This document shows positions 18,514 through 63,453 of a stretch of DNA of 64,000 bases, piece after piece. The position numbers and the translations under genes are program-made. The notes beneath the pieces are model-generated. The model did no database searches, was not told the DNA's origin, and saw only the letters and a program-made list of their open reading frames with translations. Origin of the DNA: Macrostomum lignano (Eukaryota); assembly GCA_002269645.1 (NCBI GenBank), contig NIVC01003412.1, positions 1 through 64,000 of the forward strand, written 5' to 3'. Position 1 is the stretch's first letter. Every line of letters begins with the position of its first letter.

Positions 18514-21500
18514 TTAGTATATCATTCGCCTTAGCACCTGGTTGCAAATTATCGAAATAATGATGATCCTGCTGAGTCCAATCTGTGAGACCTCTGTGGA
18601 TGAGCTGTTGCCAAAGTATGTTAGCTGAATGGGGCGCGGTGTCGTCTTCAATTCTGGCACTCTGGCCAGCTCCGTGAGTAGGTTAGCGTTGCAGCTGCTG
18701 TAGTCTCTTTGTCCCTCGGCCACCTTCTTGAAGCTCACTAGCGAGGCCATGGGCTTGTTGCAGTCGTTGAATTCGATCACGGATCTCTTGGATTTGAAGT
18801 CCACCCTCAGGGAGGCGCACGTGATCTCTTTTGGCTCTCGAGGTGATGGCGGTCTGCGATGCCGTGTGATTCAAATGCTACTTTAGATGCAACCAGTCTG
18901 AACTACAGACAACACTTCAATCTACATGTACACCCCAACCCTACAGCATCAACACCCCAATCTACACCCAACCCTACAGCATCAACACTCCAATCTACAC
19001 CCAACCCTACAGCACCCTACAAGCCCTAGTGTGCAATTTACTCCATCAATCGATCTCTCGCCGATTCGGCCCGCAAGTCGCAGTTGCCGCTGCTTGTCCT
19101 ACCAACTGAGATCACCGCCTGATCCGCCCGCCGGTAGAACAGACCCAAACGGACTGGCTCAGTGAGGTTGAGATGATCCGCGTCTGAAAAAAATTGAAAA
19201 GTTCAAATAGTTACTACGCTCGCATATTAATGTCATACTTAAGGCAAATGAATTTCTTTGCAATGTAGAGCACTGCGCTTGAACATGTGCATATATTAAT
19301 TACTCAAGATTAGGCCTATCGCACTAAATTATAATCATTATTACTGAAGAAACTCACTTTCGAGCACGAAGTTATTCATTTCAGTTTTGCTGGCAAAGCT
19401 GGCCAATTGAGCGCCTCCTCCGATGCTTTGGAGGGCGGCTGCGGCACCCTGCTGCGCTCTGCTCAGTGTGTAGCAGTTGCCATGGAAACTGAGCATAGTG
19501 GCCGCATGACACTGCCCCGCTGAAGGAATGAGGAATCTCAATTTGAAGTGGCTGCTCAGTTGGACTGCTGGGTTCCAGAAACTTTCCACCACTAGTGTTT
19601 CACTGAAATAAATGGATAGATAGATAGATAGATAGATAGATAGTAGATAGCGAGAAAGAGCGAGCGAAGCGAGCTCTTTCGAGCTTGCTTGCCGCAGCCA
19701 ATCACGCTGAAAGCACGCACACAAGATCACCGGAAACGATTAAGGCAGCTGGAAAGCCAATGGGCGCGGTAAGCGCTTTTATCCAGAGGAACTACCTGCT
19801 GGAACCAGCCATGCCGAACGAAAATCAGACTACTAAAGTAGTGCAAAAGAGTGCGAGCAACTACCGAGAAATCTAATAGATAGATAGATAGATAGATAGA
19901 TAGATAGATAGATAGATAGATAGATAGATAGATAGATAGATAGATAGATAGATAGAGGATAGATAGATAGATAGATAGATAGATAGATAGATAGATAGAT
20001 AGATAGATAGATAGATAGATAGATAGATAGATAGATAGATAGATAGATAGATAGATAGATAGATAGATAGATAGATAGATAGATAGATAGATAGATAGAT
20101 AGATAGATAGATAGATAGATAGATAGATAGATAGATAGATAGATAGATAGATAGATAGATAGATAGATAGATAGATAGATAGATAGATAGATAGATAGAT
20201 AGATAGATAGATAGATAGATAGATAGATAGATAGATAGATAGATAGATAGATAGATAGATAGATAGATAGATAGATAGATAGATAGATAGATAGATAGAT
20301 AGATAGATAGATAGATAGATAGATAGATAGATAGATAGATAGATAGATAGATAGATAGATAGATAGATAGATAGATAGATAGATAGATAGATAGATAGAT
20401 AGATAGATAGATAGATAGATAGATAGATAGATAGATAGATAGATAGATAGATAGATAGATAGATAGATAGATAGATAGATAGATAGATAGATAGATAGAT
20501 AGATAGATAGATAGATAGATAGATAGATAGATAGATAGATAGATAGATAGATAGATAGATAGATAGATAGATAGATAGATAGATAGATAGATAGATAGAT
20601 AGATAGATAGATAGATAGATAGATAGATAGATAGATAGATAGATAGATAGATAGATAGATAGATAGATAGATAGATAGATAGATAGATAGATAGATAGAT
20701 AGATAGATAGATAGATAGATAGATAGATAGATAGATAGATAGATAGATAGATAGATAGATAGATAGATAGATAGATAGATAGATAGATAGATAGATAGAT
20801 AGATAGATAGATAGATAGATAGATAGATAGATAGATAGATAGATAGATAGATAGATAGATAGATAGATAGATAGATAGATAGATAGATAGATAGATAGAT
20901 AGATAGATAGATAGATAGATAGATAGATAGATAGATAGATAGATAGATAGATAGATAGATAGATAGATAGATAGATAGATAGATAGATAGATAGATAGAT
21001 AGATAGATAGATAGATAGATAGATAGATAGATAGATAGATAACCTACCTGGAGTAGAGTGAATAAACGTGAACCATGCCCTTAGTAACAATATTGTCAGC
21101 TTGTTGCCACCCAAACATCAAGTGAGTCCTGTTACGCTGATCTTTGCGACTAATTGCCATCTCTGATTGGTCAATGTGAGCCGTCAGAATCAACTGACGA
21201 TTGCTGAAATCTTTGGCATCAAACTGGATTTCCCACTGGCAGCTCAGAGGATTCGAGCTGCCCGGCGGCTCCAAAAACCTGGGAATCAACTCGGCTTCGA
21301 ATGTCGGGCTGAAGTTTTCAACTACTTTGAGCTCCTGCTTTTGCTTGTTGCAGCGATGTCTCTGGATACCCAGTCTGAAAGATACGAGTAAATAACGACG
21401 TATTAACAATGGCAACTTGCTTTTGCCAATTTTTTATTTAAATCTTCTTTAGTAGCACCATCGATGTTCATTGATACTTTCACACCATCGATGTTGATTG

Positions 21501-21817
21501 ATACTTTCACATCATCGATGTTCATTGATACTTTGACACCATCGGTGTTCATTGATACTTTGACACCATCGGTGTTTATTGATACTTTGACACCATCGAT
21601 GTTGATTGATACTTTGACACCATCGATGTTGATTGATACTTTGACACCATCGATGTTCCTTGATACTACGAGAAAACATACTTTGATAGCTCTTATAGTT
21701 ATCAATGCTGGCACATCTAAGGTCAAGATTTAACGGATTATAAAGGCAAACTTACACTGATCCAGTCAGACAGAAAATCGTCACAGTCGCCCATGTCAGC
21801 AGGCTGACAGCTCGCAT
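18514..21817 (-). CDS. Receptor copy A: signal peptide / CUB-like / C-type-lectin-like protein, 5 exons, 371 aa
   Basis: Exons 21817-21756, 21374-21048, 19602-19358, 19183-19042, 18853-18514; intron phases 2,2,1,2, all GT-AG and in frame; MRAVSLLTWATVTIFCLTGS signal; LSFHGNCY...GAQLASF lectin-like motif; C-terminal hydrophobic stretch is short. Confidence 0.75.
19880..21040 (+). repeat. (GATA)n microsatellite, about 1.15 kb, in intron 2 of copy A
   Basis: Nearly pure GATA; accounts for the (LSIY)n ORF. Confidence 0.98.
21458..21660 (+). repeat. 27-bp tandem repeat (CATCGATGTTGATTGATACTTTGACAC) in intron 1 of copy A
   Basis: About 7 units. Confidence 0.9.
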
Positions 21818-22304
21818 ATCTTTTGGTAAATGAATTGTTGCTTGTCAAAAAAAGATTAAAAAACAAAAGCCTTCTAGCTTCTTTCAGCTCAAAATGTCTT
21901 CTTTTATTTTGAATACGAGCGCACTGAATATAAGTGTGCGCATGATAAATTCTCTTCTCACCTCAGGCAGAGTGAGCGAGTATTTATGCCAACAGCCAAA
22001 GACACGTGCACAGAAGTGAGAGCAAGTGCAGTGCAAGTACATCTGTACAGTAGACTTTTGCCTGCGAGCCTGATAGTAAAAAACGAAGTTCCCTTATTGT
22101 TGGTTTGGCCTAGAATTTCTCTAAGAAACTGCGAGGACAGAAGCCGCCACCAGTGCGTGTGAGAGATTAAGAGCTTTAGCTAAACGTTCGCTGTTTGTGG
22201 TTTTTTTAATCCTGAATTCTATTTAACTCTTTTCAGATCTCTAACTTTTTATCTTTTCAAAGATAAAACGTTTGCTGAGTTCTTCTCAGAAGTCTTCTTA
22301 CGAG

Positions 22305-61345: not shown

Positions 61346-61635
61346 GGAGTGGGGGGCCAGGTCTCTAATTGATTTATTTCTGAGCCTGAGGCCCGAAGGC
61401 TTCCCTAACAAGGGCCCGAAGGTCGAAACCCATCAATAAGAGTACTAGCAAAACACAAAATTCAAGCAAATGAATTCATTTTGGCTTGGAACCGTTACTG
61501 TGTTTTTAGCTAATGATTAGTATGATGTTTGGTAACTATTATGAGTGATTTATATTACATGGATGGCAAGCGTGGATGCAATATTACGAGTAGAAGCAAA
61601 CGTGATTGTTGACAGACCAGATATTCAATAATTAG

Positions 61636-63453
61636 CTATTGGAAACAATTTAAGTTATCCTCTCCGCTCTCATTGGGTTCGAAACCGGTGCTCTCCGTCC
61701 GATTCTGTGCCGAAGTCTGTCGAACGCCATTGAAGTTCGTTGTTTCTGGTGTTTCTAGCAAACTGTAAAACGTGTCGTCCATGCTGTCCATCCGATTCGG
61801 ACAATGCCTAGAAGGCGATTGACTTTCCATGCCATCTTGCCCTAAACTGTAATACTTATCTGAATCGAGGCTGGTCATTCTGTTAAACTTTGGATTAAAA
61901 GTCTCGTCAGGTTGTGCATCTGCTGTGAAATTCTGTGGATTTTCAGGTGTAAAATCAGGTGATTCTTCAGGTATTTCGTTGGTTAGGCCACCAGAAGGAA
62001 TCGAGTTCCGTGACAGACAACTGTAATACTTGTCTGAAAACCAGCTGACGTTTGGGGTGTGGTACTCTGAATCCAAGCTGTCCGCCCGATTTTGAGCGAA
62101 TCTTTGACCCAGTTCGGTGCCAGGTGTCGCATCGGGTGGTGCATCAGGTTGTGCGTCAGGTGGTGCGTCAGGTGGTGCATCAGGTGGTGCATCAGGTGGT
62201 GCATCAACTGTCCCACCAGAAGTAGTCACATCGGGTTCCAGACTGTGCTGATCGGCTAAAGACGAGCTAAAGTTTGGGTTTTTTGGAGTGCCAGCAGCAG
62301 CATCGACTTTATCACTTTCTGAAGCGTCTGCTGGATTCCTAGGTTTTGGTTCAATTAAAGGTTGTGAAACACTGCTCAGTTTAACATCTTCTTTCTCCAC
62401 AGACGGCTCAGAACTATTTAATGAGCACAACCGTCTTTTGTAGACAATAAACACCACAATGGTTGCAATAAGTACCAGCAGAATCGGACAGGAAACTCCA
62501 AAAATGATGGTCAACTTGCTTGCTGGAGCTTCAGTTGAGGACCAGTCTCGTATTGGTTGAGTCGTTGCTGTTGGTGATATTCTAATACCGGTAATTAGAT
62601 CAGAAGAATCTCTAGCTACAACACTAGGAGCATCAGTATATGCAATGAAATGCATCTTAGTTGTCTGCTTCTGTTGCAGAGCTTCGATAACTTTCCAAGG
62701 GACCGCCCTCGCGCTACAGCTGTCTGCATAATTGTATCCTGCCGTGCCTCCTCTCTCAGGAAACTTTACAAGAAATGGAATCTGGCTGCTACAGCTTTTC
62801 GATTTGATTTCCGCTCTGTCTGAAGAATCCACATTCATAGTCACGCACGGACCTGTCGCGGCGTCTGAATCTCTGCAGTTATTTAAAGGTGGTTCCTGAT
62901 TTACTCTCAGCTTATTTTTCATAGCCTCTTCCGTTTTACAGAGATGAAACGGAATTACTCACACAAATTTCTCAGATCCGAGAACCGGCTTCAATCCACA
63001 TTCTCCGCTATCATTTCTGATTAGAGAGAGCACTGAGGCATCGGCTGCACTGTAGAACATGCCGAGACGCACTGGCTGGCTCAGGCTCAGAGGCCGTCTG
63101 TACGGATGCACCGACAGTCTGGCTGTGTCTGAAAGCGGTTTTGATGCTCATTTTTATAATAAAGCAGACACGGAGAATGAAATTTAAAACAGATGTTGAA
63201 AGGCCACTCACTTGCAGCAATGAGATTGCGGATCTCAGACATGCTGGAGAAGCTGGCCAGCTGAGCATCGCCTCCGATGCTGGACATTGCGGCTGTCAAA
63301 TTGGCTTTGACTTTGCTCACAGCGTACCAGTTTCCGTTGAAGCTGAGCATGTCTCTGTGGCAGAGTCCAGGGAGAATCAGCAGGAGTTTGAGCTTTACCT
63401 GGGCGGCACGTTGATACCTCGGATCCCAGCTGGCCTCCACAGTAAGCGGCAGC
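61636..63453 (-). CDS. Receptor copy F, exons 3-5 (5' exons not found in the window)
   Basis: Exons 63453-63212, 63128-62963, 62872-61636 in frame; TM LTIIFGVSCPILLVLIATIVVFIVY followed by KRR; the lectin motif reads GNWY instead of GNCY. Confidence 0.8.

Follow-up and report, generated by a model that had tools for sequence, protein, structure and literature searches.

A tandem array of Macrostomum-specific genes, probably encoding type I membrane proteins with CUB-like and C-type-lectin-like domains, with signs of a mosaic exon history

What is encoded by the exons that recur along one strand of a short stretch of the Macrostomum lignano genome, and do they make up genes that could still work? 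The window analysed here covers positions 1 to 64,000 (64 kb) of contig NIVC01003412.1 (assembly GCA_002269645.1). A first-pass annotation had proposed that it carries six tandem copies of an unannotated five-exon receptor family, in which a signal peptide is followed by a CUB-like domain, a C-type-lectin-like domain (hereafter CTLD) and a transmembrane (TM) segment. Gene models were rebuilt independently by reading the minus strand in three frames and then aligning the copies with each other. Self-BLAST, reading of open reading frames (ORFs) and protein alignment confirmed six paralogous copies, termed A to F, all lying on the minus strand. The best explanation as a whole, to which we give a probability of about 0.72, is a tandem set of paralogues with a mosaic history, in which an intact gene encodes a type I single-pass membrane protein. 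Such a protein would start with a signal peptide (exon 1) and continue with a CUB-type jelly roll (exon 2 and the first ~28 codons of exon 3) and a long-form CTLD (from the remainder of exon 3 through exon 4 into the beginning of exon 5). After a stalk rich in Ser, Thr and Pro would come a TM helix and a cytoplasmic tail that is not conserved and often repetitive.

The array extends from 18514, the stop codon of copy A, to 63453, the first base of exon 3 of copy F. A block of about 480 bp corresponding to exons 3 and 4 was recovered five times by self-BLAST (23486-23991, 39177-39836, 41847-42481, 49898-50348 and 62982-63458), together with a pair of exon 2 regions from copies D and E (43006-43631 and 50364-50987) that are 97% identical. 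Copy A, which has diverged beyond the reach of DNA self-BLAST, was located by ORF reading and protein alignment. No seventh copy was found in the window when the whole family was searched against it by tblastn. A match at 30175-30306 was discarded: the query, database protein P0015, is chimeric, and its N-terminus corresponds to the neighbouring Mab-21-like gene. That such an arrangement should resemble a gene family by chance is excluded, because the exons are paralogous, the intron phases are shared and database proteins contain the same junction peptides.

Three copies have frames free of stops after splicing. Copy A (371 amino acids) consists of exon 1 at 21756-21817 (MRAVSLLTWATVTIFCLTGS, a signal peptide with a phase-2 donor), exon 2 at 21048-21374 (327 nt, the CUB-like N-domain), exon 3 at 19358-19602 (end of the CUB-like domain and start of the CTLD), exon 4 at 19042-19183 (middle of the CTLD) and exon 5 at 18514-18853 (end of the CTLD, stalk, a weak C-terminal hydrophobic segment and the stop). 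Copy D (830 amino acids) is made of exon 1 at 44093-44154 (MRAVSLLTLATVTIFCRTVS), exon 2 at 43109-43444 (336 nt, CUB-like N-domain), exon 3 at 42097-42338, exon 4 at 41853-42018 and exon 5 at 40075-41761, the latter encoding the end of the CTLD, the stalk, the TM segment VSCPILVVLVIITIVIIIV and a long acidic, Pro-rich tail of PDEP repeats. Copy E (449 amino acids) comprises exon 1 at 51501-51568 (MLNLPLPTLTAVFVLLQVLTSP), exon 2 at 50467-50802 (336 nt), exon 3 at 50094-50335, exon 4 at 49838-50009, whose 3' half is diverged, and exon 5 at 49224-49755 (end of the CTLD, stalk, TM segment and a 53-amino-acid tail).

The other copies are damaged or incomplete, so that the status first assigned to each of the six (A, D and E open, B with one nonsense codon, C a fragment, F cut by the window) held throughout. 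Copy B has exon 1 at 29155-29222 (MLNLQFPTLTAALVVLQLLMCP, signal peptide), exon 2 at 24305-24622 (318 nt, CUB-like N-domain), exon 3 at 23741-23982, exon 4 at 23491-23656 and exon 5 at 23018-23405 (end of the CTLD, stalk, TM segment and a 12-amino-acid tail). Its single nonsense codon is a TAA at 23855-23853 in exon 3, at a position which reads TAC in D, E and F. Copy C lacks exons 1 and 2. Its exon 3 remnant (39442-39693) contains four copies of a 15-nt repeat yielding four stops (39596, 39581, 39566 and 39551), with a fifth at 39449; its exon 4 remnant (39183-39356) has an internal frameshift, and its exon 5 remnant (38800-39094), nearest to the type of database protein P0002, ends before any TM segment. 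Copy F begins within the window at exon 3 (63212-63453), followed by exon 4 (62963-63128) and exon 5 (61636-62872; end of the CTLD, stalk, TM segment and a tail of ~270 amino acids), exons 1 and 2 lying beyond the window. One conserved cysteine of F is replaced by tryptophan (TGG at 63329), in the codon preceding the site of the TAA of B.

The array does not stop at the window end. Contig NIVC01000413.1 from the same assembly runs collinear with positions 50761-64000, the two being 90-98% identical, and the pair would correspond to different haplotypes, subgenomes or assemblies of one region. Judged from this contig, exon 2 of F lies about 290 nt past the end of the window, and the array goes on with at least three further copies or fragments, bringing the total to at least nine when the flanking public contig is counted in. 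The NCBI protein P0002 (BOX15_Mlig017487g1) is the gene next to copy F in this continuation; a search of papers for the locus tag Mlig017487 gave no match.

The splicing architecture is shared by all copies. Every exon is bordered by a polypyrimidine-AG acceptor and a GT donor, and the introns of A, B, D and E follow the phase pattern 2,2,1,2, those of C and F the corresponding 2,1,2. The length of exon 3 is 242 nt in four copies (B, D, E and F), with 245 nt in A and 252 nt in C; exon 4 has 166 nt in three copies (B, D and F), against 172 nt in E, 142 nt in A and 174 nt in C. The independent models thus agree with the earlier reading both on the phase pattern and on the exact 242- and 166-nt lengths in B, D and F. 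A shorter exon 4 of D (123 nt, donor GTGAAT at 41895, acceptor at ~41808), which would keep the ORF 'EEAMKNKL...', was considered and rejected, because copies B to F have a homologous downstream acceptor (YAG followed by A/C/T-G...) and the 166-nt exon restores phase 2. The least regular site is the exon 2 donor of D and E, a weak GTTCGT at the position homologous to the GTAAGT of B.

The 5' ends deserve a separate comment. Exon 1 is alike in A and D (MRAVSLLT(W/L)ATVTIFC...), with a GTAAGT donor at its end, and alike in B and E (MLNL..PTLTA...). In copy B it lies 4.5 kb upstream of exon 2, a wide gap explained by a piggyBac-like element occupying intron 1 (26470-29020, minus strand), with an apparently intact 507-amino-acid DDE_Tnp_1_7 ORF at 27203-28726 and subterminal inverted repeats. 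D and E also contain an ATG frame close to exon 2 ('MIWSIFLTGSPV...' and 'MIWSIFLTGSPVCVTVYYSQCLRFRRISS', at 43530-43445 and 50888-50803, minus strand) that stays in phase through the exon 2 acceptor. A transcript starting inside intron 1 would still specify the complete ectodomain, preceded by another N-terminus of moderate hydrophobicity; this start may or may not be used. On comparison of the copies we prefer a start in the separate upstream exon 1, since A and D share an exon 1 with its GTAAGT donor, B and E share another, and the B acceptor has no such ATG. A stretch of D intron 1 (43650-43800) resembles a tRNA-derived short interspersed nuclear element (SINE) in translation, but ARAGORN and Rfam gave no match.

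Are these junctions seen in any known protein? A family profile searched with HMMER against 1.84 billion representative proteins gave 39 matches, all the named ones being from M. lignano, and a few weak matches corresponding to spurious bacterial repeats. The best protein matches of the assembled genes are likewise all from M. lignano, with E-values down to 1e-206, and the 40-odd relatives retrieved in total carry the names 'hypothetical' or 'CUB domain-containing'. As far as current databases reach, the family thus appears confined to this species. The relative used for modelling, P0001 (UniRef A0A1I8J314), is 88% identical to D and starts with the cysteine of exon 2. It reads ...QPQKSMFPLTVEASW..., ...SLIAANTARLS... 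and ...SEGFVESNGATGPC..., which are the predicted junction peptides, and ...LIAA/N/TARLS... and ...EGF/V/ESNGATGPC... are common to public M. lignano proteins, in agreement with the predicted junctions. Another relative, P0048 (NCBI BOX15_Mlig023892g1), has D-type exons 3-5 through the TM helix plus an acidic Pro-rich repeat tail, although its N-domain exon differs from that of D. The BOX15 gene set presumably derives from a genome-guided transcriptome, which would make P0048 and P0002 transcript-supported. A collection of 15 billion proteins does not contain the A, D or E protein in exactly this form; the family is accordingly unannotated only in the sense of these exact sequences, close paralogues being already present in NCBI and UniProt.

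Pfam detected no domain in the single-exon ORFs, in the full spliced window proteins (E≤10) or in 18 family members (E≤1), and the same searches gave no Lectin_C match. Two other approaches identified the second domain. The family profile run against PDB sequences gave 21 matches, all of them CTLDs. The best one was CD69 (E=0.0024), a match spanning only the N-terminal ~45 residues, with the canonical C..W..F...CY.FS....W..A...C....LAS start. Structure prediction with AlphaFold2, using P0001 and an 18-sequence family alignment as input, returned a two-domain model with a predicted local distance difference test score (pLDDT) of 77 and a predicted TM-score (pTM) of 0.79, the CTLD part being mostly above 85 in pLDDT. 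When this model was compared with PDB structures by Foldseek, the top 28 matches were all CTLDs, as were 48 of the top 50 (probability 1.0, TM-score 0.5-0.69 to the target); they include langerin, BDCA-2, mincle, DCIR, CD69, Ly49 and snake-venom lectins. The proposed CTLD-like second domain is therefore borne out at the level of the fold.

Alignment reading indicates which CTLD features are retained. The C0-C0' pair (LCHRDMLSFNGNCY) and the C2-C3 pair (GPC...SKSC) are kept, while neither C1 nor C4 is present in the copies of the window, C1 being kept in some distant members. The WIGL motif is degenerate, with VRLGMF in its place. Of the calcium/sugar motifs, EPN/QPD is replaced by (K/Q/E)-P-(V/A) and WND by (I/V)-x-(F/S)-x-x-C, and the Asn and Asp calcium ligands are missing at these positions, their equivalence being judged by eye. 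The CTLD would then be of a non-calcium, non-classical type, like that of natural killer (NK) receptors. Ligand binding without the canonical calcium/sugar site is proposed because EPN/QPD and WND are missing, as in NK-receptor-type CTLDs.

The CUB assignment of the N-domain had been called the weakest part of the first-pass annotation. Modelled separately (P0001 residues 1-142), this domain forms ten strands, with a pLDDT of 80 and a pTM of 0.76. Its top Foldseek match is an isolated CUB domain, C1r CUB2 (E 6e-5, probability 1.0, TM-score 0.46/0.53), and 27 of the 50 top matches are CUB-containing chains, C1s, MASP, Neto2, spermadhesins, Kremen and neuropilin among them. The first CUB cysteine pair is kept (NHYC ... 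C-x-W-x-I; C8 of P0001 is nearly invariant and C44 invariant), and the C...C-x-W-x-I pattern fits the first CUB disulfide and its β-strand. The second pair is absent from most family members. The assignment thus holds at the level of the fold.

The N-domain could nevertheless be an unrelated jelly-roll or β-sandwich that resembles CUB, in which case the family would join a novel domain to a CTLD. No CUB profile matched in the Pfam scans or in the PDB-sequence profile search, the TM-scores to CUB domains are moderate (0.45-0.59), and the other 23 of the 50 top matches are non-CUB jelly rolls, such as the PNGase C-terminal domain, cupin, GOLD and ColG CBD. One CUB disulfide is conserved out of two. 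The database label 'CUB' carries little weight as well, since the UniRef names of near-identical members are inconsistent (CUB, WIF, ZP, PilZ, FHA and others). With C1r CUB2 as top match, a majority of CUB-containing chains, the conserved cysteine pattern, and an extracellular domain of the right size, we consider a non-CUB domain unlikely. On the basis of the models, both domains are best described as CUB-like and CTLD-like by fold resemblance, not by membership at the profile level.

For B, D, E and F, hydropathy predicts N-terminal segments of signal type and a strong TM helix (exons 1 and 2 of F being outside the window). The TM segment lies C-terminal to the CTLD in these copies, as in type I proteins, and the type II orientation of NK-type receptors is not seen. 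In copy A the C-terminal hydrophobic stretch is weak. Taken together, the earlier reading of the architecture is essentially right. The tails of different subfamilies show no relation to each other and are often repetitive: PDEP repeats in D, and in F DAPP repeats with three SLDS..YYSL-type tyrosine motifs. Their diversity seems to arise in part from repeats expanding inside coding sequence, the PDEP-coding repeat of D exon 5 occupying 40294-41124.

An alternative to signalling receptors would be lectin-like effectors that are secreted or shed, in the manner of the microbe-binding CLEC proteins of Caenorhabditis elegans, with the TM segment acting as a mere anchor or being removed. P0004, a member of the family, carries a 'secreted' annotation and has no TM segment at its end, and CLEC-41 and CLEC-42, which join CTLD and CUB, bind bacteria and are predicted secreted proteins (PMC8051790). 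The weak hydrophobic segment of A and tails devoid of a conserved signalling motif would suit such effectors. On the other hand, a strong TM segment followed by basic stop-transfer residues is present in B, D, E and F as well as in P0002, P0019, P0024, P0030, P0032 and P0048, and the canonical sugar-binding residues are absent. Secretion is in our view very unlikely, and a single-pass membrane protein remains the preferred product.

How similar the copies are depends on the exon considered. Exon 1 is 92% identical between A and D and 79% between B and E, for about 60-68% in other pairs, and exon 2 is 97% identical between D and E, for about 65% elsewhere. Exon 3 shows 90-93% identity among B, D, E and F, about 80% with C and about 66% with A; exon 4 shows 88-92% among B, D and F and lower values in other pairs; exon 5 reaches 79% between D and F and about 63% otherwise. 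Taken as a whole, the ~480-bp block formed by exon 3, intron 3 and exon 4 has kept about 90% identity in B, D, E and F. For intron 3 alone the figure is 78-91%, on par with the flanking exons, and for intron 4 about 64-74% except between D and F. The proportion of synonymous differences (pS) varies accordingly within one gene pair: between B and D, exons 3+4 have a pS of 0.18, against 0.68 for exon 2 and 0.70 for exon 5 (Fisher p about 1e-9), and between D and E the values for exon 2, exons 3+4 and exon 5 are 0.09, 0.25 and 0.67, respectively. Outside the A-D, B-E, D-E and D-F pairs, the pairings of exons 1, 2 and 5 are near synonymous saturation. With exons that pair differently, pS that varies within one gene pair, and P0048 joining D-type exons 3-5 to another N-domain exon, the array genes are mosaics, which points to gene conversion or unequal recombination between members. 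This mosaic history is the most interesting addition to the earlier account, and the locus offers a compact case of receptor genes undergoing probable gene conversion in a flatworm that regenerates and is amenable to genetics.

When B, D and F are compared over exons 3+4, the ratio of nonsynonymous to synonymous substitution rates (dN/dS, omega) is 0.25-0.36; these exons are under purifying selection. Omega is 0.10 in exon 2 for D-E. It is below 1 wherever it could be measured, except for a value of about 1 in D-F exon 5; dS is saturated in exons 2 and 5, which makes omega unreliable there. The family had been described as diversifying, with strongly divergent ectodomains. Strong divergence holds for exons 2 and 5 and fails for exons 3 and 4, which are about 90% identical, and diversifying selection is not demonstrated by the omega values. 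In structural terms, the conserved block corresponds to the final pair of CUB strands and to two-thirds of the CTLD, counted from its start, and the variable exons to most of the CUB-like domain, the long-loop/β3-β4 region of the CTLD, the stalk, the TM segment and the tail.

Several findings weigh against a family of working type I receptors with mosaic exons. Besides the missing Lectin_C and CUB profile matches, the modest CUB TM-scores, which other jelly rolls also attain, and the saturated dS of exons 2 and 5, selection instead of conversion could account for part of the conservation seen in exons 3-4. No more than three copies out of six are intact, the exon 2 donor is weak in D and E, the C-terminal hydrophobic stretch of A is weak, F has lost a conserved cysteine, and no signalling motif is common to the tails across subfamilies.

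Part of this list would fit decaying duplicates, pseudogenes or neutral passengers of a repeat-rich, recently duplicated genome, without current receptor function. The nonsense codon and the intron 1 transposon of B, the wrecked copy C, the Cys to Trp change of F, the non-consensus donors of D and E and the weak TM segment of A go in this direction, as do the minisatellite-like PDEP expansion in the tail of D, the absence of the window's own proteins from the protein collection and the omega of about 1 in D-F exon 5. It is difficult to reconcile with the low omega values of exons 3+4 in B, D and F and of exon 2 in D-E, with frames of 371-830 codons kept open across five exons in three copies, and with NCBI gene models for close paralogues, one of them D-type with the same repeat tail. 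We regard general decay as quite unlikely, and the encoding of type I membrane proteins by the intact copies as the better account.

We infer that the products would be cell-surface recognition or adhesion receptors. The long-loop/β3-β4 region is the usual ligand face of CTLDs. The variable exons would form the ligand face, through the CUB-like domain and this region, and the homogenised exon 3-4 block would serve as structural scaffold. A more ambitious scheme would be a germline combinatorial recognition system, in which an exon 3-4 cassette is kept uniform by conversion while the flanking ligand-contact exons and the tails are reshuffled between paralogues. We put it forward as a speculative and rather improbable possibility; if true, it would provide a diversified repertoire for recognition of microbes, of self and non-self or of gametes in a hermaphroditic, regenerating flatworm.

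How do these genes compare with known systems? Lineage-specific CTLD/CUB expansions are common in invertebrates. The nearest proteins in domain content are CLEC-4, along with CLEC-41 and CLEC-42, of C. elegans, which combine CTLD and CUB (PMC8051790). The CLEC proteins share with the present family a large lineage-specific expansion, CTLD and CUB modules following a signal peptide, and a presumed role in recognition or immunity; they are predicted to be secreted, carry their CTLD(s) before their CUB(s) and match standard profiles (PMC8051790). In contrast, the M. lignano proteins have the CUB-like domain before the CTLD-like one, a TM segment and a tail, no Pfam match, and no detectable sequence homology with the CLEC proteins. 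The best structural and profile matches are the vertebrate receptors of the NK gene complex and of myeloid cells (CD69, Ly49, NKR-P1, DCIR, langerin and mincle). Such receptors form tandem clusters of paralogues with pseudogenes and gene conversion, and CD69, Ly49 and NKR-P1, which lack the calcium/sugar site, bind proteins. They are, however, type II proteins that have their tail at the N-terminus and lack a CUB domain, whereas the M. lignano proteins are type I with a signal peptide, lack the C1-C4 disulfide in the window copies and have the degenerate VRLGMF motif.

Single-pass type I topology with an extracellular CUB and/or CTLD is also found in attractin, layilin, CD302, chondrolectin, Neto, neuropilin, Kremen and CDCP1. 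Attractin has both domains, and CUB domains of Neto2, neuropilin and Kremen are among the matches of the N-domain. These proteins have no detectable sequence homology to the M. lignano family, and to our knowledge none of them has the minimal signal-CUB-CTLD-TM layout or belongs to a tandem multigene family. The locus is thus essentially a lineage-restricted, sequence-divergent form of a familiar kind of gene family and no new kind of system. What is gained is an assignment of folds and of a type I receptor layout to a Macrostomum-only family that escapes Pfam.

Other genes are found in the window. Two ORFs, at 12617-13852 (plus strand, 411 amino acids) and 30100-31617 (minus strand, 505 amino acids), give borderline matches to Mab-21_C (HhH/H2TH-like), just below the gathering score, and are possibly genes of the cGAS/Mab-21-like nucleotidyltransferase family. 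As P0015 fuses Mab-21-like sequence to a member of the receptor family, the adjacency of both gene types probably exists elsewhere in the genome. The region 36191-37449 (minus strand) holds an ankyrin-repeat ORF of 298 amino acids (Ank_2, E 2e-21), which passes upstream into ~100-nt tandem repeats (36797-37449) that encode more such units, of degenerate 'LEVVKFLV...NAAK' type, in shifting frames.

The window is rich in microsatellites and transposons. A degraded second piggyBac-type transposase ORF is present at 15887-17205 (plus strand), upstream of copy A. A Tc1/mariner-type element at 7518-9104 contains a 373-amino-acid transposase ORF with DDE_3 and helix-turn-helix domains (7768-8889, minus strand), and its 152-bp terminal inverted repeats (7518-7669 and 8953-9104) are 95% identical. 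A Ty3/gypsy-type integrase ORF (32635-34105, minus strand) lies inside an island of 58% GC. Between D and E, two ORFs, one with a THAP domain and the other with TNP-like RNase H (47610-48446, minus strand), correspond to a remnant of a P-element/THAP9-like transposase. Scans of the window for tRNA (ARAGORN) and with Rfam gave no matches. A SINE-like dispersed repeat of ~200 nt occurs at least five times (3303-3508, 4222-4411, 22390-22611, 32594-32705 and 44737-44966). Mini- or microsatellite arrays were found at 56391-59052, 143-972, 6556-7113, 19876-21117, 38234-38730 and 40294-41124. They include a ~2.6 kb array of short units that reads VPYSKT and, in intron 2 of copy A, a tetranucleotide array of ~1.2 kb with a TCTA/TAGA-type unit.

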